A DNA stretch of 22,684 nt, from the NCBI GenBank assembly GCA_018985225.1, contig JADGIF010000081.1, positions 1 through 22,684 of the forward strand, written 5' to 3'. A program made the translations under genes and the position numbers. This DNA comes from Amoeboradix gromovi X-113. Taxonomy: Eukaryota; Fungi; Sanchytriomycota. Within the stretch, counting starts at the first letter, position 1. Each line of letters begins with the position of its first letter. Shown here piece by piece: positions 2,252-21,955 of this stretch. The notes beneath the pieces were generated by a model, which was given only the letters and a program-made list of their open reading frames with translations, was not told the DNA's origin and made no database searches.

Positions 2252-2376
2252 CTCCTTGTTAAAATTCCTGATTTCTGAGAAAATCGAGTTTCCACAGAGA
2301 AACTAGCAATGCTAGATGCTCTATTACAGTGATTGCTCACGCTTTCACTACCCTGAGGCGGGATTGAATAAGGATG
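2252..2376 (-). ncRNA. Putative omegaRNA scaffold of copy 1 (5' boundary approximate)
   Basis: Conserved element 3' end downstream of RuvC-III with several hairpins. The position matches known TnpB/Fanzor omegaRNAs. Expression not shown. Confidence 0.6.
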
Positions 2377-2680
2377 CAGATACTTGGTATATGTTCCTTA
2401 CTGCCATATGATCTCTATCTAGCTTCAAATGACATTTTGTACAGGTTCAGGTTTCTAAATTGGTTTTCTTTAGAGTAACACACCTTGCACATGTCTGACT
2501 AGTAAATGCTTCATTACATTCGATTATCGTCTTTTCTCTTTGTTTGCATTTGAAATTCAAGCGTTCCTTGAATGTGTAATGGGACATTGTGGCCATATTT
2601 CTTGCGACCTTGCTCGACAAGCTACTTATCATTTGGCTAGTATTGAGTGACGGTAAGAATATAAGATCATATGTCTTTAT
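2259..2680 (-). pseudogene. Fanzor2 (IS607-type TnpB) C-terminal remnant
   Basis: Minus strand reads IKTYDLIFLPSLNTSQMISSLSSKVARNMATMSHYTFKERLNFKCKQREKTIIECNEAFTSQTCARCVTLKKTNLET*TCTKCHLKLDRDHMAVRNIY. Pro sits at the canonical RuvC-II Glu position, with an alternative Glu in NEAFTS, a CxxC..CxxC zinc finger and RuvC-III DRD..RNI. One internal stop and a frameshift. Confidence 0.88.
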
Positions 2681-3029
2681 ATGCTGTACCTGCTAGTTAT
2701 TTCTTTAAATTTGACACGCTCAGGATCACATCTATTTATTCCATTAACAATTAGTCAGAATGGAAAATATCGAGTATTTAAGCCGTTGAGAAAATCTGGA
2801 AAAGTCATGAAATTATATAAAAATGCATACAAATTCGCAATAAATGATTTATTCAAGAAAACAATCGAGCTGTGTATATTTGTTATAGTATCTTTTTTAC
2901 TCTGCTTAAGTATCACACTTGATAGAAGATGAGAGGGTTTGTTACTGATATGCGCTGCTTAGATGCAAAGATATCTGGGATGTTTCTTAAGATGAGATGC
3001 TCCTAATAATTATCAATAAATTTATTATC

Positions 3030-4888
3030 TCACGGCTCAAATATCATGTTAACATTTTCGATTATTGATTCTACAACTTTACATGCATGCACCAGCTCAT
3101 CCTTCTCAACCCTTACTATACTTGGACCTACTCTTATAGCCAACTGAAAAGAATTAATCTTCTTTTTTTCCGCTATTCTACATTATTTATAAATTACTTG
3201 TTTAAATTTAACATCAAAGCCTTTAATGTGCAATAGTTAGAATCAGGCAGTTTGTTTACGCAATCGTGTACTCCAATAATCCTTCTTCTGTTGTCATCTG
3301 TTTTAACTGCAGCCATAAAATCCTGGATCATATCGTTTGGAATCAATCCATCTGGTAATTCTCTGAAGAACAGCAATATCATATCGCACAAAAGCGGCAT
3401 AGGAACGTTCCTATAGTCAACCGAAGGGGCGTGCTTGTTAAGCTGATTTCTCATTGAGATAATTGCATCATGGGATTCAGTAGACTGGTATATATCTACT
3501 CTTTCATTGTATCTATCCAAAGCATTCAGCAATTCCTCTAAAAATCTGGGCAAGTTAACATCATCCCGATCACATATATATTGAAGATCTACTCCAAAGT
3601 TGGTGTATATCACATCAGACGGGGTCTCATTCATTAAGCGACTATCATTCTTTGTAACCACGTGCATTTCTTCAATATGTTCAAGAAAGTTTTTGCTGTT
3701 GTTGTTGTACGAAAATCTAATAAAATCTGCCAAATCTTTTTCTAAATTGAACTTTTGAATAATCTCTAGCACTGTGGTTTGCAAAGCACCATCCTCTCCA
3801 ATTTCAGGATCGGTAGGACTCAATTGAAAACTGGGCTCTCTGTTTAAGACCAAGTGCTCAAAATCATTTTCGATATCAGTCATAGGTCCTGCTTCATCCA
3901 AACCACCATAAATCAAGTTCTTTTGATCATTAACTTTACGAACTTCCTTCCAATACATACCCCAAGCCCATTTGTATCTGTCTGCTAACTCATTACTGAG
4001 TTCCATCATGGAATGCAAAACTTTTGGTAAGTGAATCCTATAAAAGTTTTGATAAAACGCGATTAAGGATGAAATTTCTTTCTGGTACTTCTTGGATCTA
4101 TCACCCGTTTTGTTTGCGTATTTGGATTCGACATCCTGCAAAGCATCTATGCTTGGTTTGGATCCTAAAATGTTAAATGCTGATTTTCTCTTGGTAGCTG
4201 TTCGGTTTGGTTTTCCCAATTCTTGAACAAACTGAATTCTTTTATTAATTGAATCCTCCCATTTAGAAACGTACAATTCAAATTCTTTCTTCGCGGATTC
4301 AAGCTTCTTTTCTTGATCTTTTTTTCGTTTGGTCAACTCTTCTAAAGCATTTTTTAACTGTTTTCTACTATTGTCATGATTTCCATATATTCCTTTAATG
4401 TCTTGCCCAAGCGAGTCAAAACTGTGTCCCAATTCTAGATGTAAATTTCCAATCTCTAGGTGCAACCGATCTAGATATGAAAGTTTAGTGTTCATATCTA
4501 GTATAGCATCATTGGGAACCTTCTTCTGGTCTACTGATTTTTTCATCGCGCTCATGTTTGCAGATGTTGTTTTTCCTACCATCTTTTCAACTTGTGACTG
4601 TTTCTTCAAAAATTCGGAAATTTCAGAGAGCTGAAAGATCTGATATTTAAGGTACTCCATAAGATAATCAGGGCCTTCTTTTAAGTCGCATAATAAATTG
4701 ACCAAGCCATGTTCATTGAATCCAGTTTGTAATGGCTTATTTGGGTTTCTGTTAAAGTTAACTGGCTCAATCTGCCTTTCCATTGATTTGGTTAGACTTG
4801 AGTAGCTTTCCTTTGATGCTTCGCTTTGTATGTCTACTTGTCTAGCTAACGTAGCGAAACCTAATTTTGGAATTGAGTCTAAATTCAT
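3030..4888 (-). CDS. F-BAR (FCH) + RhoGAP protein, Rgd1-like; exons 4888-3198 and 3177-3030, 612 aa
   Basis: Long coiled-coil N-terminal region (EISEFLKKQSQVEK). RhoGAP motifs FGVDL, LPRFL, LLFFRELPDGLIP, LPDSNYCTLKALM. The second exon supplies LAIRVGPSI..VVESIIEN..IF. Confidence 0.85.
3178..3197 (-). other. 20-nt spliceosomal intron GTAATTTATAAATAATGTAG
   Basis: Removal restores the missing C-terminal helices of the RhoGAP domain in frame. Confidence 0.85.
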
Positions 4889-5158
4889 CTTGACCTGACC
4901 TATTTTTCAAATTGTAAGAGGCATTGGATTTCAAACAATTTTAATCAGGTTTAAATTTAGGGCAATAGTAATCACATTAAATCGTGGTTAGTTAAACTTA
5001 CTGAAAAATTTAATAATTTCAACATGAAAAATTTCGAGTAGCAAATAATTGATCATCAATATGACCACTATTTGCGCTTTATTTCTTGTCGTCTTTCGTA
5101 ACTATAATTGACATTTACTTAAACTTTGATAGGCGACGTTACCAACTCCAAACAGAAA

Positions 5159-5938
5159 ATGCTAAATATTTTCAGAACATTCGTGTTGATTTCTTTAAGC
5201 GGATTTCTATTCTACTACTTCTCTCCAAGTGACTCTAGCATTTCTCGTAGAGCTCCTACTAATTTCATTTCACAGTGTAGTACTTTAGTTCCTAACATGG
5301 TAGCTTTGACGATTTTGGACATCGGACCGCATCTGAATGATTGGCTAGCTGCATTGAGTATCCAGCAAGTAAAGGTTACTTTCATGTTGGATCGAGCAGG
5401 ATTAGGTAATGCTGAATTAGTAAATCAGATCTTTAATGCAGGCCATAACATTGGTATTGATGCGAGATCTGAGGCATTGACAACCTCTAATATAGTATCC
5501 ACTTTGAAAGAATTGAGCAACATAGTTGGCCCAATTATCAAAAAAGCTCCAAGATTCTACACCTTGAGCGATAACAATGCCGAACAATTAGCATCTGTAG
5601 CTTTGCAAGCTGGTTTGTATGCTGTTAAACTTAACACTGGGTTTTTAAAGACTGGTGACATTGTTGCCCAGGTTGCAAATGTTCAGCTCGTTGGCGACCA
5701 AACAATTATCGGGATGGTAGACTCTACAGCAAGTCTTATAAATACTAATCAATTTTCTGGATTTTTGGCTACTTTGAGAAATTCGAAAAACAATTTGGTA
5801 TCGCTTGCGGATTGCACTCAAAAGACATCAGCTTATGATTTATGGTTTCCAAATGAGAAATCAACAGCTGCACCTACTGAAAAAAGTGGTGAGACCAAAT
5901 TTAGTGCTGGAAGTGTAAATAAATGGTTGTGGTGGTAA
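5159..5938 (+). CDS. NodB/CE4 polysaccharide (chitin) deacetylase-like protein, catalytic residues degenerate
   Basis: First ATG at 5159 with a hydrophobic N-terminus. C..PNMVALTILDIGP (for TFDDGP), KVTFML, GHNIGID (for GHxIGxH), APRFY, LVSLADC. Confidence 0.7.
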   Translation: MLNIFRTFVLISLSGFLFYYFSPSDSSISRRAPTNFISQCSTLVPNMVALTILDIGPHLNDWLAALSIQQVKVTFMLDRAGLGNAELVNQIFNAGHNIGIDARSEALTTSNIVSTLKELSNIVGPIIKKAPRFYTLSDNNAEQLASVALQAGLYAVKLNTGFLKTGDIVAQVANVQLVGDQTIIGMVDSTASLINTNQFSGFLATLRNSKNNLVSLADCTQKTSAYDLWFPNEKSTAAPTEKSGETKFSAGSVNKWLWW

Positions 5939-5977
5939 TATAAATAAATTTATGAGATTATAGAGATTTTAATTTAT

Positions 5978-6875
5978 TCACAACAAATTTAATACGCACA
6001 AGCACAGTAATATGGCGGAAAGTAGACCAGCGCTATTTTTTCCATTTCCTTTATTTTCAGGCTGGACAAATGAGTTCATGTAAGGCGGTACTCCTAGACA
6101 CTCACTCAAAGGAAGGACTTTATAATTGTAGGATTTAACAAGCTCGATATATGCTTCTATGTCTTTACGAACAAGTTTGTTCTCATCCATATGAGTATGT
6201 GCCCAAATATATTTTAAGCGGTTTCCACCAGCGACATAAGGGTCCATTGTGCTTTTGTAAGTGCCATATAAATCCGCGTTACTTTGTGTTAAATCTTGTA
6301 AGTAAACCTGCGCTTTGATGGGTAGAAAACCCATTTCCATTGCCCATTGAGAAGTTTTGACTTCTGTATCCCATGATACACCATACCTTAGTTAACAGAA
6401 ACTACTTGAAAAATACAAATTTTGGATACGAAGATCCTCCAATAAATGTCTTCATGGTCTCTGCGTATCCAGCGAGTGTTATTTTAAATGTGGTCTGATC
6501 CATATTATCCAAATCCTGAGGAAAAGATGGGAATGCTAATCCTATCTCCATACCATCTGCAACCAGCCCATCTATTTGTCCTTTTAATCCTGCCTGGCTT
6601 TCCACAGTTACAGGGTTAATAAAGAAAGTGCATTTTAGTCCACGAGAGATGCAAGCTTGCCTAAATTCATAAGTTTTGTTAAAACCAGGTCCATCTCCGA
6701 ACACTATTGACATTTGAGATATGGTATTACATTCTCTTCTAAAAAAATAGTTTGTTCCAGCTTGTCTTCTCTGAGCAGGCTTTCGAGATAGATCATTATC
6801 GCTACTCCCTCCAAATCCATAATAAGCTACTATTGCAGCAAGCAAAAAAACGGAAATTCTAAAAAGATTCAGCAT
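5978..6875 (-). CDS. NodB/CE4 deacetylase-like surface protein; exons 6875-6406 and 6386-5978, 292 aa, probable GPI signal
   Basis: SIVFGDGP, KCTFFI, GMEIGLA, PKFVFFK|YG across the intron (RPPYG-like), YKVLPLSECLG. Signal peptide and hydrophobic C-terminus. Confidence 0.75.
6387..6405 (-). other. 19-nt spliceosomal intron GTAGTTTCTGTTAACTAAG
   Basis: Joins ORFs 6402-6875 and 5978-6340 in frame. Same intron signature as the others. Confidence 0.85.
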
Positions 6876-7210
6876 TCAAATATAATGAGGCTTGGCCGGT
6901 TACGTTTACAGAAGCATCTAAAGGAGAAATTCCAAAACAAATGGGACATGCAACATGACTTATACAAAGACCTTCATAGAAATTTGATATTTTGACTGAG
7001 AACATTGGAAGACTTTCACATTTTGAAATAGTGCTAATGCTAACCTAGTAGGCATTGGTTAAAGTTGTGAACACCTTGCTACGCAGCTGCCCTGGTATCC
7101 GAATTGTACTTCATAGGCAAGAACTAGAACAACATTGTCCAACTGGGAAACGAAACGCCTGAAAAGCTTACGGTTATCCATAAAATGCAAATTATGTCCA
7201 AAACCATTTA

Positions 7211-8152
7211 CTAAATGTAGCTTATCAGCATTATAGATAGTAAAGTTTCTAATCTGTTTGAATAAGAACCATAGTCCACTTTTGTTTTTTTTGAGTTATC
7301 TGAACTGCCCGTTACTGGATCAACGCAAACAGTTGGCATTTTGAAAAAACCTGGTGATGCATTTAGGCCTGCCGGTATGGAGTTTGCTATATTAATAATT
7401 AAACTACTTGATTTCAGAGTGCTTTCTGATCCTAAGCCTACGCAGTCTGACATCTGTACAACAGCGTACCCCGAGGCCGCAGCAGCATCTAATATCTGAT
7501 TGACAGCATTACTATCAATCGAATTAGTATCCGAATCTTCAATGCTAAACACATAACCAGCTCCACTGCTCATGTAGCTAGTCATAATGGCTATATCTTC
7601 TGTTTTTTGTAAATCGCCATTTCCCTTTGTGTTTTGTATGACGACAAATCCCATAGCATTAGCTATCTGAATCATGGGAGTCAAATCAACCAAACATATA
7701 TCTTTTGAGATATTTGGAATTCTTATAAACTTTGGCCATTGCCCTGCAAAATTCAATGCAACGGACACCTTGTCTGCATATTGCTTCAAGTAGTTGGCAA
7801 AATCTTGGGCGCTCATGGCAGCAATATCCTCAGGCCACAGTGGTATCTGCATTCCGACAATTTGATTTTTACTAAACGCATCATTAACTGCAGCCTTGTT
7901 CTCCAGATTTAACATATTCGGATTGACCATAAACGTAGCCTTTTCTTTTTTCAGCTGGAAGGAGTTCAATATAGAACCTGTCTTCGATGACGGGCCCCAA
8001 GTAGTCATGAAAGATACAGTTTTTGGTTTAGTGCACTGATTAAACATTCTTAACGCCTGCCTTTGCTCTTGTCCCGTCGAACTTCCTTCGTTAGATGTCA
8101 TGTAAGAAACGATGACTAAAATAGCTGTTAAAGTTTTTAAATTGTCAAACAT
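7211..8152 (-). CDS. NodB/CE4 deacetylase-like surface protein, catalytic residues degenerate
   Basis: CTKPKTVSFMTTWGPS, KATFMVNP, IVGMQ, PKFIRIP, GYAVVQMSDCVG. Signal peptide and hydrophobic tail. Paralog of the adjacent gene. Confidence 0.72.
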   Translation of the reverse strand: MFDNLKTLTAILVIVSYMTSNEGSSTGQEQRQALRMFNQCTKPKTVSFMTTWGPSSKTGSILNSFQLKKEKATFMVNPNMLNLENKAAVNDAFSKNQIVGMQIPLWPEDIAAMSAQDFANYLKQYADKVSVALNFAGQWPKFIRIPNISKDICLVDLTPMIQIANAMGFVVIQNTKGNGDLQKTEDIAIMTSYMSSGAGYVFSIEDSDTNSIDSNAVNQILDAAAASGYAVVQMSDCVGLGSESTLKSSSLIINIANSIPAGLNASPGFFKMPTVCVDPVTGSSDNSKKTKVDYGSYSNRLETLLSIMLISYI

Positions 8153-8367
8153 GGCTGAATGGGTTATTATCTCGAAAAATCAATTTTATTTATAAATGTT
8201 TAAAGAAAGAGATTGATACTAGTGATTATTTTTCGTCTTGTGAGGTTCTGGTATTAAAATCAAATCGTGCTTTATTGATCTAGTTTTTTCGTCGAAGTGC
8301 CTCTTTTTGTTTTCTGGGTGAGACTCTCGCATTTAAAATAATCACTTTTACGGAAGATCTGGAAATA

Positions 8368-8715
8368 TCAAATGACTCTTGGATTACCTCTAAATGGTGG
8401 ATCCACACTGTCCAAAATGGAAGAAATCTCAAAATTGCCTTGCACAAGCGACATAATGTCATGCTTTATCTGGGCTAGAACATCAGTCAGGTCAAATTCA
8501 AATCTGACAACAGATCCAGATTCAATAACATCTGCAAATTCAGTAAACAAACGTTTTGATTCATTTGGCAAATGTTTCACAGCTTCGCAATTACCAAAAT
8601 TAAGTTGCTTTGCACATTTTAGCAACTCCATTTGAAGATCTTGAGTCATCAAAGACTCTAGGCTCTCAGTACTGATTCCAGAAATAACAGATAAAAGCAG
8701 AACTTGGATAAGCAT
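8368..8715 (-). CDS. Small hypothetical secreted protein
   Basis: ATG at 8715 gives the signal-peptide-like start MLIQVLLLSVISG. No recognisable domain; 3' end uncertain. Confidence 0.4.
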   Translation of the reverse strand: MLIQVLLLSVISGISTESLESLMTQDLQMELLKCAKQLNFGNCEAVKHLPNESKRLFTEFADVIESGSVVRFEFDLTDVLAQIKHDIMSLVQGNFEISSILDSVDPPFRGNPRVI

Positions 8716-9436
8716 ATTTTTGTATGGATGTGTTAAGATTATATAACCCCCAATCACTTAATATATTCGGCCATATTACGGGATTGAACTGTGATTCTAG
8801 CAAACTTGTTGCACCATCACTAATGCCAACAGTGTGATTACATGATGAGCCACTGGTATCAAAAGTTATGGTACTAAAATTTAACTCTCAAAATCCTCGA
8901 TTTAACATAGTCAAATATCTTTATTTTCTTCTCATGCCGTATCCAACAGGAAGTCATAGTTTGCGAAACATCCACAGGGAATAAGTGTCTGTGCAACTAC
9001 TAGCCAAAAATATCTCTAAATCTGTATTGTAATTATTAGAAATGCTGGCGATTAGAACCTAAATAAATCTGTTGCGTAGTTATTGAAGATGACTAAAATA
9101 CAGTAGAGCGCTAATGCTATTATAAATAGTAGCTCGAACAATGGCCTATGTTGTAGGCAAGAAATTTAAAAAAATGTTAGGAGATAAGCTCATTTTGCAT
9201 TTCAAAATTGCTTGATGCAGTGATTTTACACGTGCAAAAAAATTCTGGCTAAATTATATCACTTTACTGATCTGCACAGGAAGCGAATACAATATGTGAA
9301 GCGCAACCCGATATAAGAGTTCTTTTGAAATTCAAGCGAATGATTCTTGACACCCAAGTGCTAATAAATAATTTTCAGGTTACATAGGCTTCGAACGTCA
9401 AAATAGATGCCAATTATTGCGACTCAGATCTTTCTA

Positions 9437-9563
9437 CTCCTCATTAAAAGTTCTGATTTCCGACAAAATCGAGAATTTCCAGAGAGAAGCTAGCAATGCT
9501 AGATGCTCTATAACAGTGATTGCTCGCGCTTTTACTACCCTGAGGTGAGATTGAACAAGGATG
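9437..9563 (-). ncRNA. Putative omegaRNA scaffold of copy 2
   Basis: Homologous structured 3' end. Confidence 0.5.
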
Positions 9564-9912
9564 CATATACTTGATGTATATATTCCTTGCTGCCATATGA
9601 TCTCTACTGTTGTACAAGTGGTAAGACCATTCACATACGAATTATTAAATAAATGGTTCGCAGGTTTATTTATCTTTGATTTCTTTCTAGGCATTGAAAG
9701 ATATCAAATTCTTCCGTGCTTGGACCAGCTCTCTCAGAGTTGATGAACGTATGCTGTACCTATTAGTTATTTCTTTAGATTCCATTTACCATTTGTGAAA
9801 AGGAAGAATATCGAGTATTTGAGGTATCGGAAAAATATGGAAAACTCATGCAATTATGTAAAAATACATAAAAACTCTCGATAAATGATTTATATTTTAC
9901 AAAACTTAATAG
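9437..9912 (-). mobile_element. IS607/Fanzor2 non-autonomous element, copy 2 (left end diverged)
   Basis: Colinear with copies 3 and 5. Right end TTTTAATGAGGAG. Terminal ~20 nt of the left end degenerate, preceded by TCAG. Confidence 0.85.
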
Positions 9913-10096
9913 CTGATTGATATTTCAAGCCGAATCTCATGAAAAGGTACCAAGTTGGAGCACCAACAAAAACGCTTGCGATGGTCATATGTATGGAGTC
10001 ATGTGGAGGGAATACGTCATTTACAACCAATTGGATCGTTAGAAAACAACTCAAAACTCGATGCTTGAAAATATACTTTGAGTGATTTTTGATAGG

Positions 10097-10739
10097 ATGA
10101 ATGCTTTGATGATTGTATTAATGACCATATCTAAGGCGCACGTAACAGCCAACCCTAATTATGGAGCACCTAAGGCTTATTTGGCAACTTATTTCAGAAT
10201 CGGGCATTCCTGCTCTCCCTTAGAGAAGACCACGTCTGTAGAGATTGAGATTCCTGATGGTGTGTACACTGTCAGACCCAAGTACACGGCTGGATGGACA
10301 TTCAACGTGACGACTGTTCAACTGGAAACTCCAATTACTGGAGGCGAGACTCCAATCACCAGTAAAGTGACAAAGGTAACATTCAACAGTGCTGAGGGGC
10401 TAGCCAACGATGCTTACGAGGATCTGGGATTAAATTTCCAACTTCCGGACAAGGCAGGAACAAATTTGTTTTTCAAGACAACTCAGAAATGTCCAGGAAA
10501 CACAACTGCATGGGTCAACATCCCGGAAAACAATGACATAGCAAAGTGGGGAAAGACTGCAAAGCCTGCGCCGTACGTCATGATCAAAGCAGAAACCGTG
10601 CCTGAAGCATCCACACAGGATCCTGTTAATTTGGGAATTGCAGTTGCAGGTAATTGAAACTAATTAAGCACTAGTTATTAGCGTGATTGCGTTGTCTGTT
10701 GGAAGTGTAATAGCTATAAAAACAAGAAAACGAACCTAA
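10097..10739 (+). CDS. YcnI/DUF1775-family copper-binding membrane protein; exons 10097-10649 and 10669-10739
   Basis: Signal peptide ending ..SKA|HVT gives an N-terminal His. Motifs FRIGHSC, TTSVEIEIPDG, P..AGW, QKC....W, PAP. The second exon gives a C-terminal TM helix plus basic tail (ALVISVIALSVGSVIAIKTRKRT), as in bacterial YcnI. Confidence 0.85.
10650..10668 (+). other. 19-nt spliceosomal intron GTAATTGAAACTAATTAAG
   Basis: Contains a CTAAT branch motif. Removal completes the TM helix, and the stop is followed by AATAAA. Confidence 0.85.
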
Positions 10740-10834
10740 GTTAATAAATTTCAAGTATATACAAATCATTGTGCAAACTTAGGAATTAAGCAGAGGGTCC
10801 CGACTCAAAGCAAAATTTACGTATTTATTTGTAT

Positions 10835-11197
10835 TTAATGGTGGTGGGAATTTACCGTGTGGAGTTCCATTCCATCAGCAGTCTTATGAGGAATAGTAGG
10901 CGCGCCTTGGATAAAGGCCTTGGGAACGGTAGCCGTCTTACTACTTTTGGTATCAGAAGTTCCATTTGGAGAGGGTAAATTACCATCGGGGTGGCTGTGG
11001 TTATGTTCTGAGCTCATCAAACTATATAAACCGCCACCAGTGACAACACCTGCAGAAAAAGATGCCAAAGTCTTAAACCACGGACCTAGTCCATTTAGAA
11101 ACGATCTAGTGTTCTCGCCAACAGCGTGACCATGGCCGCCGCAACAGTCGCCAGGAATCGGGACTGCGAACAAGGTAATAAGCAGAAATATCATCAT
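10835..11197 (-). CDS. Small His/Cys-rich secreted or membrane protein
   Basis: ATG at 11197 (MMIFLLITLFA). Contains CCGGHGH, a hydrophobic segment, HNHSH and a C-terminal HHH. AATAAA follows the stop. Confidence 0.55.
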   Translation of the reverse strand: MMIFLLITLFAVPIPGDCCGGHGHAVGENTRSFLNGLGPWFKTLASFSAGVVTGGGLYSLMSSEHNHSHPDGNLPSPNGTSDTKSSKTATVPKAFIQGAPTIPHKTADGMELHTVNSHHH

Positions 11198-11864
11198 TTT
11201 GGAATTCTCTAAAACTGATGGATAAGCAAAGCTCACGTGATTTTAGCCAATGAGATTATGCCAATGTTTTATCACATCTTGATTAAGTACATTACTATAC
11301 AAAATTTTAACATGAGCTTGACCTTATGATCTCTTAACGTACAAGTCTATGGTTGATCATCGGTACTTTACCTCTAATTCCATAGTCTGGAGAATATGAG
11401 AACCCTTCAGTATATGAGACCCATTTTGATAAAATGTGTTTATTCCCAAGTAGTAGGAACACCTAGAAACCACACTAGGAATCAGACATCGTCATGTCAT
11501 CAAATATGAAAGCTTATCAGAAATAAGAAGGGATGTACTGTGAACAAGAGTACATTAAAAACATCAAGACAGAATATGAAAACAATTTTCGGTTGAGATA
11601 TTGCAACATGTGCTCAAATGCTAATCGGCTGAGCTATTTTAAAAGAGATATTGCCAGCGTATTTTTCATATTGAGAAAAAGCTTGATTGCATATTATGTG
11701 ACTGGCACATCTTTCTGCTCTTACGAGCGACAATATTATCAGAATAGAAAACTGGAAAGGCCGATTGAAATTACTGCTTTTTGTTTTAATATTCAACTAG
11801 AGTAACTGTATTATATTTATTGCTTTTGTGCCAGTTTGCGGTGATTACTGGCCATTGTTTCATA

Positions 11865-12992: not shown

Positions 12993-13076
12993 TTCACTAC
13001 CCCTGCGATGGAATAATTGTGTTAATCTGCTTTAATCAATCTGTGTAACCCTACTTTGTTTAATATTTAGGAGTTG

Positions 13077-13200
13077 CTCCTCGTTAAAAGTTCTGATTTC
13101 TGAGGAAATCGAGAATTTCCACAGAGAAACTAATGCTAGTTTCACCGTTACAGTCACTGCTCACGCTTTCACTACTCTGAAGCGGGACTGAATAAGGATG
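13077..13200 (-). ncRNA. Putative omegaRNA scaffold of copy 3
   Basis: Homologous structured 3' end with a remodelled hairpin GAAACTA-GCAT-TAGTTTC. Confidence 0.5.
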
Positions 13201-13531
13201 CAGATGTTTCATGTAAGTGTTCCTTGCTGCCATATGATCTCTACTGTTGCATATTCGGTAAGACCAATCACAAGAATTATTAAATAAACGGTTTACAAGT
13301 TTATTTATCTTTGATCTCATTCTAGGCATTGGAAGATACCTAATTGTTCCATGTTTGGACCAGTTCCTCAGTGTTGATGAATGTATGCTGTACCTGTTGT
13401 TTCTTTAGATTTGATTTACCATTTGCGAAAAGGAAGAACATCGAGTATTTAACCTATTAGAAAAAGTCATGAGATTATATAAAAATGCATACAAATTCGC
13501 GATAACTGATTTATTCAAGAAAACAATCGAG
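13077..13531 (-). mobile_element. IS607/Fanzor2 non-autonomous element, copy 3 (455 bp)
   Basis: Intact ends ACAG|CTCGATTG...TTTTAACGAGGAG. Encodes SIHSSTLRNWSKHG (TnpA HTH) and RDHMAARN (RuvC-III). Confidence 0.9.
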
Positions 13532-13701
13532 CTGTATGATCCTCAAGTTTGTTTTACAAATTAATTTGAACTGAGAGATCGGTCAAAGAGTTGTCCCAAG
13601 TGTAGTTTGCATTTTAATTTGGTTGGGCATCCAATCAAGTCTAGCTTCGAGTTGATTGAGCGCTAGTTACTGATTAAAAGCCCCCAAGCCCACTAATCAT
13701 C

Positions 13702-15258
13702 ATGTTGTGGACTGTTTTATTTGCACAATTTACTGTGCCATGTGCCAATCCTAGATTGCGTAAAGATTTTCGAAGATATACTACCCAGGAATGGGCTGAC
13801 TTTACAAGGGCGTTCAAATCGATGAAATCATCAGGCGAGCTATCAAAATTCGCTGCTTTGCATTGGAGTATATATGGTGACATTCACAGTGGCGTAAGCG
13901 TCCGTAAAAGGAACTTTTTAACTTGGCATCGTGCTTTTATTTATGAATTGGAAACTCGATTGCGTCAAATATCTGGTAAGCCTATCACTCTGCCGTATGT
14001 CGACTGGGGTAATGAGGCAGATGTCTACAAAGGTGCTGTTAGTAAGAGCGTCGCTTTCAAAGGATATTACTATGGCGAAATGGTCGGTCAGTGCTTAACT
14101 GGCAATATTTATGATTCGTTCTCTTTAAGACCTGATTTTGTGGAATATAACAAACTTAGGGGAGATAACCGCCAATGTATCTATACCACCACCAATACTG
14201 CTGTACCAGTTGGTGGATGGGCTACAGTAGATGGTACTATCTTCAACAAGAAAGCCTTTGCCTCCTTTTCTGATGATGTGGAATATTCCATCCATTACCA
14301 AGTTCATACACACATTGGTGGACTAATGACATCTAAAATATCACCTATTGTTCCGATATTCTTTGCTGTTCATTCATTCGTTGATCTGATGTTTACTACC
14401 TGGCAGTATGTGCATAACCAGTGGAAAAACATGCCTGAATCATTTTCTAAATCCACATTTCAAATATTGTCAGGGAAAACCTACACACACGAACAAGTTT
14501 ATGGGATGAATGAAATGTGTGTGCGATATGAGCGGGTTCAGTCTTCTAGTTTGTCATCAAAAGATAGAAACACCTTGAGCCCTAAACTCTTGAAAAGAAT
14601 GTCTGAATTACAAGATCTACATAGTTCATTGATATCAGAACCCACAGCAACTACCACTCATTCACCCACATCAGCTGCAACGCTATCTTCCCAGGAGTCA
14701 ACAGAAACTGAGACTGTAGTCTACTTGAAACCAGTTGTAACTGTTCCTACAGACCAGCAAGTGTTGGAATACAACACCAAATTGAATTCATACTACAACG
14801 AGGTCAAAGCAATTTACTCCAAGGCTAATTCGAATGAGACAGATGCTGATGACGAAGCATACACTAAATGTGCTCAATTTTATGGAAACAGTTCATTTAT
14901 TCCAGTTACTACTAAGATGAACAGTACTCTGTTAAATGCATTTCATATAGATCCAGTCTCATACCAAAAGCATCTAGAGCTCAAGAACAAGAGGAATATT
15001 CAGATTGCGCAGCATGCAAAATTGCCAGTTTACGTCGGAAGCTCTAAAAGCACCGACTACAAAAAAGTACAAAGCAATTTGAACGCTACATACAAAGGCA
15101 TGAGATTGCAGGCGGAAACAGACGGAAAAACAGCCATGATTGAACAGGCTGCAACAGCTACCGAAGAGTTAAATTCAGCCCAAACAATCAAGGCATATGC
15201 AAGTGGATCACACGATTTAGTTACGGCAATGTATATTCTGACACTTATAGTGATTTAA
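13702..15258 (+). CDS. Secreted tyrosinase (type-3 dicopper) with Ser/Thr-rich linker and hydrophobic tail
   Basis: RLRKDFR N-terminal motif. CuA H(WSIYGDI)H...FLTWHR, LPYVDW. CuB IHYQVH..IGG.M...PIFFAVHSFVD. Confidence 0.92.
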   Translation: MLWTVLFAQFTVPCANPRLRKDFRRYTTQEWADFTRAFKSMKSSGELSKFAALHWSIYGDIHSGVSVRKRNFLTWHRAFIYELETRLRQISGKPITLPYVDWGNEADVYKGAVSKSVAFKGYYYGEMVGQCLTGNIYDSFSLRPDFVEYNKLRGDNRQCIYTTTNTAVPVGGWATVDGTIFNKKAFASFSDDVEYSIHYQVHTHIGGLMTSKISPIVPIFFAVHSFVDLMFTTWQYVHNQWKNMPESFSKSTFQILSGKTYTHEQVYGMNEMCVRYERVQSSSLSSKDRNTLSPKLLKRMSELQDLHSSLISEPTATTTHSPTSAATLSSQESTETETVVYLKPVVTVPTDQQVLEYNTKLNSYYNEVKAIYSKANSNETDADDEAYTKCAQFYGNSSFIPVTTKMNSTLLNAFHIDPVSYQKHLELKNKRNIQIAQHAKLPVYVGSSKSTDYKKVQSNLNATYKGMRLQAETDGKTAMIEQAATATEELNSAQTIKAYASGSHDLVTAMYILTLIVI

Positions 15259-15268
15259 CAGTAAACAA

Positions 15269-15716
15269 ATTGTTTTCTTGAATAAATCATTTATCGCGAA
15301 TTTGTATGCATTTTTGCATTATTTCAAGACTTTTCCAGATTTTCCTAATAGCTTAAACACTCGATATTCTTCCTTTTTGCAAATGGTAAATCAATTCTAA
15401 ATAAATAACTAGCAGGTGCAGCATACATTCATCAACGTTGAGGAACTGGTGCAAACATGGAAATTCGAGGCCATGTACAATATGTGGCACTCTAAAGAAA
15501 ACCAATTTGAAGAGCTATTCATGTACATAGTGTCATTTGGAAGTGGACATGGACCACATGGCACCAAGGAACATACACATCAAGTATCTGCATCCTTATT
15601 CAATCCCGCCTCAGGGTAGTGAAAGCGTGAGCGATCACTGTAACGGAGATCTAGCATTGCTAGTTTCTCTGTGAAAATTCTCGATTTTCTCGGAACTCAG
15701 GTCTTTTAAAGAGGAG
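15269..15716 (+). mobile_element. IS607/Fanzor2 non-autonomous element, copy 4 (opposite orientation, distinct deletion)
   Basis: Left end ATTGTTTTCTTGAATAAATC. Reads ITSRCSIHSSTLRNWCKHG joined to PCTICGTLKKTNLKSYSCT*CHLEVDMDHMAPRNIHIKYLHP. Ends in GAGGAG. Lies just after the tyrosinase stop. Confidence 0.9.
15591..15716 (+). ncRNA. Putative omegaRNA scaffold of copy 4; guide would begin at 15717
   Basis: Hairpins CCC-GCCTCA-GGG, AGTGA..GC-GTGA-GC..TCACT, CTAGC-ATT-GCTAG. 3' GAGGAG. Confidence 0.6.
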
Positions 15717-15728
15717 TAAACAAATTGT

Positions 15729-15782
15729 ATTTATGGGTCATATTTTATCCGAATTTACTCACAAGAAATGGCCATCATCTGC
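15729..15782 (+). repeat. 54-nt block repeated at 21910-21963 (3 mismatches)
   Basis: ATTTATGGGTCATATTTTATC(C/G)GAATTTAC..CAAGAAATGGCCATCATCTGC at both sites. Confidence 0.85.
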
Positions 15783-15814
15783 GGCCCGCATTTCATAATT
15801 TTTAAAGCATATAA

Positions 15815-16260
15815 TTACTTACTTTTCGCTAGTTGTTTCTCATACAGGTAGTTTATTGTTTTCATTATGTTTCTATTTCTTCTTGTAGACAACTTTTGAT
15901 TACTCGTAGTTGCTCGGAGAGTTCCCAGTTTTTAAAGAAAGTGCTGGCTGATGTTCTGTTTCTTTTTTTCCAAGTAATTGTTTTGAAAATCTTGTGGTTG
16001 TAATAAAAATTGAAAACTGGTGTCTGACTCCAGGCGAGAACGAATATCATAATTTGTGCTTCTTATATCTTTTGTCTCTCCGTTTCTGCCTTTTAGGACT
16101 ACTATTTCTTTGTTTTTTAGCTGAACTCTTAATTCTTGTTATTGTTCTGCATAGCAACCGTTCTGACAATTAGAAAAACTTACCACAAACCCTAGTACGA
16201 AAGTAATATATAAAAGCAACAAAGAATAAATTCCAGACTTATTAAAAAAGTAAAAACATC
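15815..16260 (-). pseudogene. Decayed ORF, possibly related to the secreted family at 11865-12992 and 21956-22336
   Basis: Long minus-strand frame with sparse stops (QELRVQLKNKEIVVLKG...) after a hydrophobic, frameshifted start. Similarity is weak. Confidence 0.25.
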
Positions 16261-16670
16261 ATTTCGAACCTACCATAGAAAGTTAGCGATTTAAGGGTGT
16301 TAATTTAAAACTTGATTTTTTGTTTCTCAGAAGCACCAATCAGACTTAACAAAATTTAATAGGAAACTTCAGCTAGAAATTCTGATTGGTGGTGTATTTT
16401 ATATTAGGATGAGGGCAATTAAGTATGGATGTGTAGCTGTTAAATACAATACAGCATACATTAGTTAGAGCTTCTCATCGTGTAAGTTGATTATATGCTT
16501 TCATCTTACACTGCTTGTAGCATTGCGCTGTTTAGATCTTTGACAATAATTTATTGAGTGAACCGCAATTAAGTCTTGAAACTAGAGAATATGACATAAA
16601 GAAGTACTGCAATTCTCTTTTATTAACAAGCTCTATTTAACATTTAATCTTGAAATCATTATTTATCATA

Positions 16671-17296
16671 ATGTACCAGCTGAGACATTTTAGTCAATAC
16701 TCAATTATGGAGACAACCATATCTTTACAGATTTCGCATGGCTTTCCGTTTAAAGTTTTTGGCTCTACTAGTGGCTTGCCATGATAATGCCACCAGATGA
16801 AATTTTGATACGCGAATTCAGCGATGGAGACGCCACAAAAGGTGTATACTTGTACAAATATACAGGCAGCATGATCAATGACAAAGTCGTAATTGCTGGT
16901 GTAAACTACGAAATTCCAAAACTCATGCAGACTCCAGAATACTTTATTAGAAAGTTTGGACGTAGTAGTGAAATCCAAGCTCGCTAAAAACATGATGAAA
17001 ATCTCAGGCATGTATTTCACATTAAATCGAGAGATCAAATTAGTGCTGAAAGTGATATACGAGTTTTTCTATGAAAACAATTATTTAACTTGCATATGCA
17101 CAGAACTCATTTCTGCAATTTAGTTAGGCAGCTTTTAGATGACAATTTAATTACCTTTAATGGTAATCTTAATAGTATCGACTTTAGACGTATGTACGAG
17201 ATATATGAATTTAACCTCGACGACATGTACCAGGAATTTTCGGAACACGAGCTGAGAGTTAGTCATTTGATAATACGCTTCGGTCTTCAAATCTGA
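16671..17296 (+). pseudogene. Decayed coding region of unknown product
   Basis: Successive short plus-strand ORFs with protein-like composition, separated by single stops or frameshifts. Confidence 0.3.
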
Positions 17297-17698
17297 TTCA
17301 CTTGGACAGAGAGTCCACCTATGAATTTCCTCCTCTTGAGAATCATTGTAAATTTCACTGAGGTCTGAAAATTCAAGAAAAGATGAACTCTCGGACCGCG
17401 CATTAGGTTATTACTTGTACAGCAACTAAAAGAAACATAAGATCGAACTTCATAGCATACTAACGTGCTTACCCTCTTATGTTTAAGATCGAGTGTTATG
17501 ATTGTTGCCATTATTAATTTTTGTGATGAAATTACAAGTCTCACCAATCGTGACCTTAATTACACTTTGAGGACTGATCCTTTAGCATCAAATTGAACGG
17601 GTTGACTGAGTACTACAAAAGTCCTATTGCGTTCATTAAACAAATTCGCATGAGTGTTGCCTTTTTAAGGAGATAACTACCGAAACACGCAAGATTTA

Positions 17699-18427
17699 AT
17701 GAACACTTTTAGAGATCAGCATTTAGATAAGACTATAAAAAAGTCAGATTTTAGATTAAAGTTATGTTGCTGTGATGAGAATACCGATTTTATTATCGCT
17801 AATGATGAGGATGTTCTTATGTTTACCACAAATAACATCCCCTATGACGGAAACTCATCCGTTTGGTTACTTCCTCATTGGAAATTAAATAAAGAGAGAT
17901 TGAAACGTGAACGCCCATTCTGTAATCCATCCAAAGGCTTTGGATACTACGTTAATTGTAAAATAAAAAAATGCCGTACTGGCTATTACTATCCACTGAG
18001 TGTAGGTTATCACGATAAACCTGGCTTGACCAAGCTAACAATGACGACCAGGTTAGAAAAAACTGAAGAAGTAAAGGAATTGATTCGTTTTGATGGAAAG
18101 AAAACAGATTGGCAAACGGAGTATACTCCAATTCTGGATCCTAAAAAGACAAGAACAGAAGACATATATCCAAAGTACGAGGGGTTAAACATATCTCCAG
18201 AGTACACGGGGTTACCTAATGAGACTGATGATGGTGTTTTTTTGTATTTTGGTACTTTAATGTTGTTTGACCAGTTTGAATGGACTGTCAATAATAGTAT
18301 TAACAATAAAGACAGGGAATTTTCCAATAAAAAATGGAGAATAGTGTCATATTGTCTTGTTAGACTGCTATCTATTGCACTCGACAAAGAGCCGAACTGT
18401 GAAGATATGCTCAACCATAAGATTTGA
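17699..18427 (+). CDS. Hypothetical protein or fragment; weak PIN/XPG-like motif
   Basis: 242-aa ORF. DFIIANDEDVLMF resembles the S/N-DSD-hydrophobic-F motif of XPG/FEN1-like nucleases. Abuts the next ORF out of frame. Confidence 0.35.
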   Translation: MNTFRDQHLDKTIKKSDFRLKLCCCDENTDFIIANDEDVLMFTTNNIPYDGNSSVWLLPHWKLNKERLKRERPFCNPSKGFGYYVNCKIKKCRTGYYYPLSVGYHDKPGLTKLTMTTRLEKTEEVKELIRFDGKKTDWQTEYTPILDPKKTRTEDIYPKYEGLNISPEYTGLPNETDDGVFLYFGTLMLFDQFEWTVNNSINNKDREFSNKKWRIVSYCLVRLLSIALDKEPNCEDMLNHKI

Positions 18428-18441
18428 TCAGCGATGATGTT

Positions 18442-19758
18442 ATGATCAACATGGATCCCTTTAATGGTGTCTTTGAGTGTATAAAATCTAAATATAAAGA
18501 GGTCTATAAAAAGTTTCTTAAAAAGGGAGATCATGACCTAAAAGTATTTAAGGATCGTATTGTGGTGCAAATTACAAATCGCATTTTATTAATTCTTAAT
18601 ATTTGTAATGACAGTGATTTCATAAATATCATAAAGGATGTTCAGTGTATTATAAAAGAACAAATAAGCAATTTCAAAGAATTTGATATTGAAATTTATT
18701 TAAGCGTTTTGAAAATATTTAAATTAAGAAAAGATCATCATCAATATAAAGAAGTTTATAAGACGCTAAAAGGATTTTGTAAGTCTCCAGATTCTGAGCA
18801 ACAGTTGTGGAATATGTTTAAACCAAATAGAGAAATAATAGAGATCGAAAGTCCATATGATTGGATGGCAGTTTATAAAAAAGAGAGATTTGAAAGAAAG
18901 GATGAACTTTTACGCTCTGTTCATTATATTCTGGAAGATCCTTATTTCTTCAATACAGTGATGGGTAGGATAAGTTTTAACGCAATAGTTCCTCAAGAGG
19001 AACGAGAGATTATTGATGCCATGATTAAGTCATATTACGAGTCCGAATCAAAAGATAGATACGAATGGAAAGAAGCCCCTAACTCTGATGATAAAAAGTT
19101 CAAATTTGCATGTCTTTTGTTTTTGTTTAAAAGAACAGGAAGCCCAGTTTTCACAAAAGAAGAGTTCTTAAAGCTCCTCAAGGAAACTCCAAACATTCAC
19201 TATCTACTACATGGTGGCTTAGCTCTGCTTGTGTTGAAGAAACTGAGCTTCTCTGTGGAGCAAGCCATGGTCCAATACAAAAAATTGATTCATCCAAAAG
19301 TGTGGCGATTATTAACATTTTATGAATCTAACTGTGCTACAATCAATATCGACCTTCATACATCCTTTTTAAAGGTGGGTCCTGAGATTCTTGGATTTAC
19401 TGTGCCGTTTATCATGGAGATGCTGAGAAAGCATACCAAGAAACTCAAAGAAGAGAATACCTCCAAGGACGACGGTTACCGAGGACTAAAAACTATAAAA
19501 TGGATTATTATTTGCGGGAAAGGTATTCATGGAGGTGGCGAAAGCAATCGTGGTAGAGGTAGAGGCAATCGTGGTAGAGATAGAGGTAGAGGCAATCATG
19601 GTAGAGGTATAGGCAATCGTGGTAGAGGCAATCGTGGAGTTTCTGAAATCCTAGACAAGACAATCGATAAAGGGATTATCGAAATAGAGGATAAACATCC
19701 ATTTAAAAAGTTAGTTAATTATAAAATTCCAAAACCTGAATTTCCTGAAATGCATTGA
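18442..19758 (+). CDS. Helical protein with C-terminal Smr (MutS2-like) domain containing an RG-rich insertion
   Basis: Smr motifs INIDLH ... WIIICGKGIH (consensus DLHG...IITGxGxHS). First ATG at 18442. Confidence 0.65.
   Translation: MINMDPFNGVFECIKSKYKEVYKKFLKKGDHDLKVFKDRIVVQITNRILLILNICNDSDFINIIKDVQCIIKEQISNFKEFDIEIYLSVLKIFKLRKDHHQYKEVYKTLKGFCKSPDSEQQLWNMFKPNREIIEIESPYDWMAVYKKERFERKDELLRSVHYILEDPYFFNTVMGRISFNAIVPQEEREIIDAMIKSYYESESKDRYEWKEAPNSDDKKFKFACLLFLFKRTGSPVFTKEEFLKLLKETPNIHYLLHGGLALLVLKKLSFSVEQAMVQYKKLIHPKVWRLLTFYESNCATINIDLHTSFLKVGPEILGFTVPFIMEMLRKHTKKLKEENTSKDDGYRGLKTIKWIIICGKGIHGGGESNRGRGRGNRGRDRGRGNHGRGIGNRGRGNRGVSEILDKTIDKGIIEIEDKHPFKKLVNYKIPKPEFPEMH
19544..19637 (+). repeat. 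Coding minisatellite GCAATCGTGGTAGAG(GTAGAG) x ~5 encoding NRGRG repeats
   Basis: Imperfect tandem units of 15-27 nt visible directly. Confidence 0.9.
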
Positions 19759-20075
19759 CACATATAGAGTTCTATATATGCTACTAATAAATCTTTTTCG
19801 AAATTCATGCAGTCTATATGAACCCAAGTGAAATTCTGACATGTGATAATAAACCAGAAATCAACATTTTTTGCAAATCTGTGACTTTATGGTGCATTGA
19901 AGATTTCTAGCGATTTTGAGAGCTTAGCATTTCTGGTGAGTGATGCTCTGTTCAAATTAAGCAGAGCTAATGATATTCAACATTAAGAAATATGATTATT
20001 TATTTTTTCAACTTTTTCCAATCCTGTAGTAGATCTGCAGCACCTAGTCCTTCATTCATGCTCATCATTTACTAA

Positions 20076-20708
20076 TCAACACCTTGTAATTCTCATCGCA
20101 TAAAAAACCAAATATTTTATCTTTAATCTCATCCTCGGTTTGATACCCTTTAAAAGGAACACTTTTGTTGGTAAAGTAGTCCAATGATTTCCTTGAGTGA
20201 TTTTCCCAGTGCGTATATCCAAGAGATCTGCATCAGATTCCATAGTATTTAGTTCGTTACCTCTAGCAGATATACGGTCTAAGATCTCTGAAATAGCACT
20301 CTCGGCCTCCTCATTCTTTTTAACCACATTGTCTCTAGACCTAATACGAATGAACCAATCCGAAATAACAGTCATAAACCCATTATGCTTTGTACTCCAA
20401 TACACTAATTCAATTACCTTGATAATTAGTTCCTTATCCATAGTAAGTATCCTGTCCTTATACTTATTGAAATGCTCTTCTATAGCTTCCAAATCAGAGC
20501 ATTCTCTCTTACTTTTTATCTCGAGTAAACAAACTTCCAACGCAGATAGTAGCACAATCTCGATTGCATTAGGGACTGCGCTTGAAAGAATATAACTAAC
20601 GGTACCAAGGCCTTTGTTTTTTCTCTTTGGAATTGTTGAAGACCAACCAAAATCGATTAGCATTATTTTATATTGCGAGTTTTCAGCAAATCTTGTGTAT
20701 TTTTTCAA
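20076..20708 (-). pseudogene. Protein kinase-like C-lobe fragment
   Basis: IMLIDFGWS (DFG motif) and GTVSY. In-frame stops upstream; no N-lobe or HRD motif seen. Confidence 0.45.
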
Positions 20709-20870
20709 AGCGTATTGGATGATTCTTTAGCAAATAATATGACCTCTTCAGAGGAGGAAGTGATTATTATCTAAGTCTTGATTGTCTCTTAAGCAGCAAG
20801 GAACCTCTTCCTGGTATGAGCACGGATCATCTTCATGCTTGTTGATTTGTTTATGTTTAGCATTTTATGG

Positions 20871-20996
20871 CTCCTCGTTAAAAGTCCTGATTTCCGAGAA
20901 ATCGAGAATTTCCACAGAGAAACTAGCAATGCTAGATGCTCCGTTACAGTGATTGCTCACGCTTTCACGACCCTGAGGCGGGACTGAATAAGGATG
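20871..20996 (-). ncRNA. Putative omegaRNA scaffold of copy 5
   Basis: Homologous structured 3' end, including the perfect hairpin GATTTC-TCG-GAAATC. Confidence 0.6.
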
Positions 20997-21115
20997 CAGA
21001 TACTTGATGTATATGTTCATTGCTGCCATATACTCTCTATTGTTACACATGTGGTATGAACAATCACATAAGAGTTATTAAATAAATAGTTTACGAGTTT
21101 ATTTATCATTGATCT

Positions 21116-21223
21116 CTTTCTAGGCATCGAAAGACATCTAATTGTTCCATGTTTGTACCAGTTCCTCAATGTTGATGAATGTATGCTGTACCTGCTAGTT
21201 ATTTCTTTAGATCTGACGTATTC
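21116..21223 (-). pseudogene. IS607 TnpA (serine recombinase) N-terminal MerR-type HTH remnant
   Basis: EYVRSKEITSRYSIHSSTLRNWYKHGTIRCLSMP matches the IS607 TnpA winged-HTH pattern (Y....E....(G/S)(V/I)...TLRxW...G.I). The catalytic domain is deleted. Confidence 0.75.
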
Positions 21224-21955
21224 GGTATTACAACCATTAATTCCATTTACTATTTGCGAAAATGAAAAGAATATCGAGTATTTAAGCTATTGGAAAAGTA
21301 TTGAATTATACAAAAATGCATACAAATTCGCGATAAATGATTTACTCAAGAAAACAATCGAGCTGTCCGAGTTGGTGTTTTATTTGGGTTTTTTGAAAGC
21401 TCCTCTTAAGTAGTATGTCTGACCATCAGTAATCTGGTATGCCAATAGTGATATTTCCAATTCATTTATTTATTAACATTTTTATATGCTCTCCATGGCC
21501 GACGCAAAATTTATGCCCATCCAGGCATTTCCAGATGATATTAGGTCATCTTGTTTTTGCATCCTTCTTTCGTTCACATGTTGTCTGTTTGCGTGAAACC
21601 TTCGACCTTAACACAGTTTTTGTTTCGACACTGAGTTGGTGGCATGTATTAAAATGTTGTCACCAAGGTTATAACCAATAAACCTGATCTGGTGACTACA
21701 ATGTCATGACGGTTACCGATCAACAAACCATTGATTGGTTGATAAAGAATGACAAGTAGTATATTGGAGATAGGTACGTTATGTTCAAGGGAATCGCATC
21801 AAGGCTTCTCAAGTTCAAGGAACAACTACATTTGGTAAAACTACTAATTTGAAGCTACATTCATACTATGCTGGTGAAAAATATCCTTTTAGATGTTGAA
21901 ATTAAACGCATTTATGGGTCATATTTTATCGGAATTTACCCGCAAGAAATGGCCA

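Follow-up and report, generated by a model that had tools for sequence, protein, structure and literature searches.

A 22,684-nucleotide stretch of contig JADGIF010000081.1 from Amoeboradix gromovi X-113 (the whole of it referred to here as the window) contains five short related elements that are very probably non-autonomous miniature deletion derivatives of one IS607-type (IS607EU) transposon family, encoding a TnpA serine recombinase and Fanzor2, in the nuclear genome of this organism. A. gromovi is a tiny sanchytrid fungus that parasitises algae and has a reduced genome of 10.5 Mb. The copies in the window are dead as protein genes.

Five related elements and their CAG/AG junctions

The five elements are mutually homologous (BLASTN E values of 1e-22 to 1e-141 in a self-comparison of the window), and apart from them the self-comparison returned only one 54-nt pair. 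Five homologous elements had been proposed in an original prediction made from the letters alone; all were found at their predicted places by BLASTN and alignment, the peptides quoted for them are all present in the window translations, and the proposed share of about 11% agrees with the summed element length of 2,496 bp, or 11.0% of the window. Pairwise identity is 82–93% in the last 165 nt and 72–87% in the first 125 nt. All five are situated between host genes, in flanks unrelated to one another.

Copy 1 (2252–2869, − strand, 618 bp) consists of the left end, the first ~24 TnpA codons, a deletion, the RuvC-II, alternative Glu, C4 zinc finger and RuvC-III of Fanzor2, and a predicted omegaRNA right end closing with AG; its nuclease frame is interrupted by a stop at 2447–2449 and a frameshift past RuvC-III. 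It is preceded by CAG at 2870–2872 (−), the AG of which would be the crossover core. Copy 2 (9437–9912, −, 476 bp; CAG 9913–9915) has a diverged left end starting with CT, a frameshifted TnpA helix-turn-helix (HTH) with the next helix, a RuvC-III tail and an omegaRNA right end with the full 5-bp pseudoknot. Copy 3 (13077–13531, −, 455 bp; CAG 13532–13534) belongs to the deletion lineage common to copies 2 and 5 and holds a stop-free TnpA-HTH/RuvC-III fusion frame of 106 amino acids (13087–13404, −). In copy 4 (15262–15716, +; CAG 15259–15261) the TnpA HTH is fused to the Fanzor zinc finger and RuvC-III ahead of the omegaRNA right end; its length is 455 bp counted from 15262, and homology to the other copies begins at 15269. 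Copy 5 (20871–21362, −, 492 bp; CAG 21363–21365) retains the most complete TnpA N-terminus (HTH at 21122–21247), together with a RuvC-III tail and the omegaRNA right end.

The "sharply shared ends" of the original prediction proved true of one side. All five copies have a sharply defined right end, ..GGAG; the left end, CTCGATTG, is exact in copies 1, 3 and 5 only, since the first ~20 nt of copy 2 have diverged, and in copy 4 a stretch duplicated from its own right flank takes the place of the first 4 nt. The hexamer CTCGAT is found in the left tip, again ~90 nt in from that end, and once more ~37 nt from the right end. A stretch at 21399–21408 (−), TTAAGAGGAG, about 35 nt outside the left end of copy 5, resembles the right tip of the family; no homology was found upstream of it, and the resemblance may be chance.

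All five copies are preceded by 5'-CAG and close with GGAG, so that AG stands at both junctions in five of five, and the C at position −3, also constant, has a chance probability of ~2e-4. We read AG as the crossover core, by analogy with the 2-bp crossover of IS607. The CAG|CT left end was also found at three of the retrieved loci (L082, L083 and L002), and the GG-AG right end, placed by homology and pseudoknot, at L082, L001, L002, L313 and L314. At copy 3, 44 contigs of the sequencing run change to unrelated sequence precisely at the right end, and at the left end 46 change only after matching CAG or ACAG, with loose contig ends piling up at 13077 and 13534/13535; because the run contigs part from the element at these points, the CAG/AG motif is indicated to hold genome-wide.

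Characterized IS607 transposases use a GG core strictly (PMC6188088, PMC10690162). However, the rule is a matching 2-bp core, and target-adjacent motif (TAM) ends other than GG have been published, namely AGGAG for RAGATH-18 TnpBs (PMC11061315) and CCG and TAG for two Fanzor2s (PMC10432273). An AG core therefore does not exclude these elements from IS607; it is an unusual variant, neither unprecedented nor a new principle. Among other Fanzor2 loci, an automated call placed CG past the predicted pseudoknot strand in L017, L084, L097, L117, L131 and L140, which suggests a CG-core group.

The ends also bear on how the copies were spread. Fanzor2 genes captured by other elements (Fanzor2*), with terminal inverted repeats (TIRs) as well as target-site duplications (TSDs), do exist (bioRxiv 10.1101/2023.08.09.552727), and a duplication at copy 4, described below, could be read as a 14-bp TSD; a cut-and-paste, Helitron or retro element could then have spread the copies with the TnpA piece as a passenger. 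We consider this highly improbable. No TIRs and no poly(A) tail were found in the five copies and no TSD in the other four, so that the features of Fanzor2* are absent, whereas the same dinucleotide occurs at both junctions and the same ends are found on intact relatives encoding TnpA.

TnpA and Fanzor2 remnants and their intact relatives

Clade hidden Markov models (HMMs) were made from the proteins of the retrieved loci (75 TnpAs, 124 Fanzor2/pro-Fanzor) and run on 936 six-frame pieces of the window, with 60 shuffled windows as the null (best scores of 10.3 bits for TnpA and 7.9 bits for Fanzor). Within the elements the best scores were 27.5 bits for the TnpA HTH and 95 bits for the Fanzor RuvC-II/zinc finger/RuvC-III region. 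TnpA positions 2–43 were matched in copies 5, 3 and 4 and weakly in copy 2, and the Fanzor C-terminus in all five. The weakest HTH pieces (10.3 bits in copy 4, 5.4 bits in copy 2) are not significant alone, and were assigned because their DNA is homologous to that of copies 3 and 5. The MerR-type HTH of the original prediction was borne out most clearly in copy 5, with 55% identity to the TnpA of L002 over 42 amino acids (E=1e-11) and a match to the TnpA clade HMM at E=8e-8.

The Fanzor2 C-terminal remnant of copy 1 lies at 2351–2692 (−). Its stop-free nuclease piece matches PF07282 (E=2e-8) as well as TnpB models, has the mimivirus Fanzor2 9B0L as its best match in the PDB (E=1.3e-5), and is 54% identical to the Fanzor2 of L082 (E=1e-30). 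Proline occupies the canonical position of the TnpB RuvC-II glutamate, and a glutamate stands six residues ahead of the zinc finger; the substituted RuvC-II Glu with an alternative Glu is a signature of Fanzors (bioRxiv 10.1101/2023.08.09.552727). This rearranged RuvC-II, together with the RD of RuvC-III, was recovered from copy 1 and from 23 genomic fragments, in agreement with the RuvC-II, C4 zinc finger and RuvC-III that had been predicted. The profile searches suggested as a check thus succeeded for the nuclease piece, whereas the short HTH pieces were missed by Pfam, NCBIfam and PDB searches and recovered by the clade HMM.

One assignment was not upheld. The peptide CDWSYRI had been taken as a probable Fanzor N-terminal piece, but in copy 3 it scored 1.8 bits on a Fanzor N-terminal sub-HMM (24 of 500 shuffles did as well) against 4.7 bits on a TnpA sub-HMM (6 of 500), and in copy 5 the stretch favours neither. 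It cannot be assigned to Fanzor, and in copies 2, 3 and 5 the residues past the HTH align with the next helix of TnpA itself. Fanzor-like readings of 15783–16200 and 21400–21900 were likewise not significant with the clade HMMs.

Outside the five copies, a piece at 8286–8405 (−) resembles the catalytic-serine motif of TnpA and may be a sixth, far more decayed remnant. It scored 12.4 bits with the TnpA HMM (E=0.0034 among 936 pieces), higher than all 60 shuffled windows; no NCBIfam match and no ends were recognized for it, and a stretch resembling RuvC-II, not significant, comes after it in a different frame. The piece may be an older remnant.

The pattern of substitution in the fragments fits neutral decay of protein remnants, with zinc-finger cysteines substituted at 6 of 85 positions as compared with 149 of 1,731 positions overall. 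The two catalytic acidic residues were unchanged in 43 of 43 observations, an invariance that possibly reflects selection by the searches themselves.

The closest intact relative is a metagenomic element of ~1.9 kb (L082/L083; JGI Ga0102960_1025404 and Ga0209932_1011863) in which a 214-amino-acid TnpA overlaps a 583-amino-acid Fanzor2. Its TnpA passes the NCBIfam model NF033518 at 173 bits (cut-off 110), the TnpA of L002 passes this model too, the Fanzor2 of L082/L083 has 9B0L as the best PDB match, and the A. gromovi nuclease C-terminus is 57–64% identical to that Fanzor2. L082 and L083 carry two different left flanks and one right flank in two assemblies. Because the left flanks differ, the left boundary of the element is fixed at CAG; the difference itself may be a rearrangement or a chimera. 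Intact IS607 TnpA genes overlapping the Fanzor2 open reading frame (ORF) in another frame, overlooked by the gene caller, were also observed in L002 (3146–3865) and L314 (34 to ~750). Exact DNA patterns of the right end had no match in metagenome or viral contigs, and single-protein locus scans with P0005 and the L082 Fanzor2 had none either, whereas alignment searches did find relatives.

Placement of the sequences in a phylogeny had also been suggested as a check. In a quick search on 145 columns with moderate support (copy 1 entered with X at its stop; distant rows L289–L312 and Fanzor1 excluded), the A. gromovi sequences fell among IS607-associated Fanzor2 and pro-Fanzor proteins, where they form one group (Shimodaira–Hasegawa-like approximate likelihood ratio test, SH-aLRT, 93) that is sister to L082 (91) within a set of 14 rows (88), apart from the cyanobacterial pro-Fanzors. 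That set includes L315, from a contig with capsid genes of nucleocytoplasmic large DNA viruses (NCLDV), and since it holds this NCLDV-borne member, a giant virus is a likely source of the parent element.

Amplification, omegaRNA and the left junction of copy 4

The family extends well beyond the window. EukProt lists 25 predicted A. gromovi proteins on 25 different contigs that belong to it, and the closest relatives of the copy 1 peptide are all such EukProt predictions, 77–85% identical. Deletion junctions recur at unlinked loci (those of copies 2, 3 and 5 with P0186, that of copy 1 with P0002, that of copy 4 with P0193), and further junctions are found in P0010, P0187 and P0003. As unlinked loci share these junctions, the deleted forms must themselves have been mobile. 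Sequencing-run contigs gave 2,200 records on copies 3 and 4, with the host DNA between them single, and contig depth was not taken as copy number. At the density of the window the genome would hold ~2,300 copies; this figure leans high, as the window had been chosen for its density. At least 30 loci were demonstrated, with dozens of distinct flanks in the reads. A 2013 survey reported 1–22 IS607-like sequences per eukaryotic genome, often as segmental duplications, and did not conclude that transposition had occurred (PMC3673617). The main text of the A. gromovi genome paper (PMC8371127) contains neither "repeat" nor "transpos", and Amoeboradix is unnamed in those supplements of Saito 2023 (PMC10432273) and Yoon 2023 that were searched.

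Unrelated flanks, the fixed CAG target, shared deletion junctions and fragments on 25 other contigs together support amplification inside the nuclear genome. The original prediction, upheld in its main lines, had further proposed an autonomous tnpA+Fanzor2 parent that amplified there. The layout and ends match the intact L082/L083, and the tree and the unrelated flanks agree with this proposal, but no autonomous parent was found in this genome, and we infer its existence.

An unlikely alternative is that the enzymes were never long resident: a giant virus, infecting or endogenous, would have supplied TnpA, and perhaps Fanzor2, in trans, or else the copies would go back to viral DNA that integrated repeatedly or to segmental duplication, and not to nuclear transposition. 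The clade member on an NCLDV contig (L315) would be in line with this, as would the lack of an intact parent in the predicted proteome and the finding that multiple IS607 sequences in eukaryotes studied earlier had mostly arisen by segmental duplication (PMC3673617). However, the flanks are unrelated and consist of host genes (a G-alpha gene with a 19-nt intron, RhoGAP and tyrosinase) without viral passengers, and exact ends at a fixed CAG require recombinase action at each site. Duplication and bulk integration are thereby excluded, whereas the enzyme could still have been supplied by a virus. Contamination or an assembly artefact is hardly credible: the genome was amplified from single cells, with bacterial contaminants removed afterwards (PMC8371127), but the copies are decayed, 72–93% alike in their end regions, placed among intron-bearing host genes and accompanied by relatives on 25 other contigs.

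The nuclear family would have descended from a ~1.9-kb parent, probably acquired from a giant virus, in which a TnpA serine recombinase gene overlapped a Fanzor2 gene whose 3' end doubled as the omegaRNA. As suggested by IS607 biochemistry (PMC6188088, PMC10690162), TnpA would have bound short end repeats (the two ends each contain CTCGAT), released the element as a circle through a 2-bp crossover at AG and inserted it at 5'-CAG without duplicating the target. Copies with deletions that retained both ends would have moved in trans and amplified. Fanzor2, with the omegaRNA of each copy and a guide drawn from its right flank, would have cut empty CAG sites, and repair from the filled chromatid would have restored the copy, whereas filled sites would be spared because the right end is preceded by GGAG rather than CAG. 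The full form of this proposal, in which nuclear transposition at CAG sites brought an element of bacterial type to the scale of eukaryotic transposable elements, with more than 1,000 copies and up to ~10% of the 10.5-Mb genome, while Fanzor2 homed in trans on protein-less copies and left scars, is tentative, and we hold it somewhat more doubtful than probable.

The right end is, by prediction, an omegaRNA scaffold with a covarying pseudoknot. In the predicted fold, the final ~130 nt form a small hairpin and three stem-loops. The hairpin loop is complementary at five of five positions to the five bases just ahead of the terminal AG, in four sequence variants across relatives, and its stem varies from CCC/GGG to GCC/GGC. 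Within the window, the pseudoknot pairs are fully kept in copy 2, and three or four of the five remain in copies 1, 3, 4 and 5. In copy 4 the predicted scaffold core spans 15605–15716 (+), with a nexus hairpin at 15605–15616 whose loop pairs with 15710–15714, three more predicted stem-loops, the terminal AG and a predicted guide start at 15717. The same pseudoknot has been described for IS607 TnpB and Fanzor2 RNAs. Rfam gave no real match for the window, and the guides of copies 1, 2, 3 and 5 had no CAG-adjacent match over 9 nt within it, so that we propose no regulatory target nearby.

The left junction of copy 4 may record the action of such a guide. A 12-nt copy of its right flank (15717–15728) stands at its own left junction (15262–15273, +), so that the order is CAG, the first 12 nt of the right flank, and then the left end, entered via a 5-nt microhomology. 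The chance of a 12-nt match is ~4e-7, or ~2e-4 for the 7 nt that lie outside the microhomology with the left end, and one contig record spans the junction without differences. In sequence, the duplication consists of a precise empty-site joint, after which the element is re-entered. Fanzor2 is known to cut 9–21 nt past its TAM (PMC10432273, PMC10530073), and a break past CAG that was trimmed only to +12 and extended on the filled chromatid would give exactly the structure seen. We slightly favour the reading that this single junction is an imprecise product of Fanzor2 homing and repair. An origin without Fanzor cutting, through template switching in replication, through repair, between an empty and a filled allele, of a break that arose spontaneously, or as an amplification chimera, has a substantial chance of being right, if not quite an even one. 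The case is single, a 5-nt microhomology is enough for slippage, and the DNA was whole-genome amplified (PMC8371127), with the only sequencing run that holds the window probably being its source. However, the left part of the junction corresponds exactly to an empty site joined at the AG core, the switch-back falls just short of the Fanzor2 cut range, and two assemblies of the reads both have this junction as their consensus.

Several observations weigh against a TnpA and Fanzor2 family amplified and homing in this genome. The predicted proteome yielded no intact TnpA and no full-length Fanzor of A. gromovi. RuvC-I (DPG) is deleted in all five copies, although it is present in L082, P0005 and P0032, and the TnpA catalytic domain, which the closest intact relatives possess, is deleted from all five as well, with one weak separate piece at 8286–8405. 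The tree is short and quick, without starred support around the A. gromovi group. Single-sequence folding z-scores are weak (−0.35 to −1.56), and no compensatory pairs occur among the five copies alone. The evidence for a homing scar is a single case, and the total, probably hundreds to ~2,000 copies, is an estimate.

Host surroundings and comparison with known systems

Flanking host genes identified in a Pfam scan encode G-alpha, RhoGAP, tyrosinase and DUF1775 proteins. Of ten ORFs in the window, seven are identical to entries in EukProt. In the G-alpha gene, the exons of which were examined one by one, a 19-nt GT-AG intron lies at 1403–1421 (+) and the frame resumes at 1423. The tyrosinase-domain gene (PF00264; 13702–15258, +) ends in a stop codon directly followed by the CAG that copy 4 entered, and copy 4 likely sits in the 3' untranslated region of this gene. 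Three probably secreted ORFs at 5126–8152 resemble polysaccharide deacetylases by eye; two of these (5126–5935 and 7214–8152) had no Pfam match at E<0.01. An RG/RGG-rich tandem repeat (19523–19642, +) lies near the end of a 444-amino-acid ORF without a Pfam match. The 54-nt repeat from the self-comparison (15729–15782 and 21910–21963, +; 94% identical) stands outside the IS607-Fanzor2 family, with one of its copies starting directly past the duplicated 12-mer of copy 4; it could be a small RNA, or mark where a second element family ends.

With many insertions that each keep a record of their target motif and guide, nuclear transposition and homing can be tested from sequence alone. If the intact natural TnpA and Fanzor2 pair of L082 integrates at CAG and cuts next to it, as predicted, compact editors and scarless integrases would gain a specificity that is new. 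A sizeable part of this "reduced" parasite genome is suggested to be transposon debris, some of it annotated as proteins. According to a 2026 review, restorative homing has been shown for bacterial TnpB/IscB and not for Fanzors (PMC13565253); a scar like that of copy 4, if true, would be evidence from nature for homing by a Fanzor in a eukaryotic nucleus.

Among known systems, the IS607EU/Fanzor2 elements of giant viruses and Acanthamoeba (ISvMimi, ApmFz2 = PDB 9B0L; PMC3627910, PMC10530073, PMC13565253) are alike in having a TnpA with a MerR-type HTH followed by a Fanzor2 with rearranged RuvC-II, in lacking TIRs and TSDs, and in an omegaRNA with a pseudoknot that overlaps the 3' end of the gene. 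Their core and target are GG/GGG, in contrast to the AG core, CAG target and protein-less miniatures at very high nuclear density in A. gromovi. The intact L082/L083 shares the same HTH, the same nexus loop, the CAG|CT left junction and the GAGG-AG right end, but is metagenomic and unannotated, whereas the A. gromovi copies are deleted forms. Fragmentary ORFA/ORFB remnants similar to those described here were reported from fungi, oomycetes and amoebae (Gilbert and Cordaux, 2013; PMC3673617), without the exact ends and fixed target of the at least 30 A. gromovi loci.

The Fanzor1 "ghosts" of Spizellomyces (Saito 2023; PMC10432273) are similar in that a zoosporic fungus carries protein-less copies with both ends and an omegaRNA (134 ghosts, with functional ghost RNAs). 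Those elements have TIRs, Fanzor1 and 42 gene-bearing loci (19 full-length), in contrast to the serine recombinase, Fanzor2 and several nested deletion lineages of A. gromovi, where no intact gene was found. Bacterial IS607 elements (IS607, IS1535, CboIStron; RAGATH-18 TnpBs; PMC6188088, PMC10690162, PMC11061315) have the 2-bp crossover, direct end repeats, TAM matching the target and restorative homing model that are proposed for the A. gromovi family, and differ in an experimentally strict GG core as opposed to AG. The family itself is thus known, if rare in eukaryotes, and what is new here is its probable scale, its AG/CAG specificity and the putative scar.

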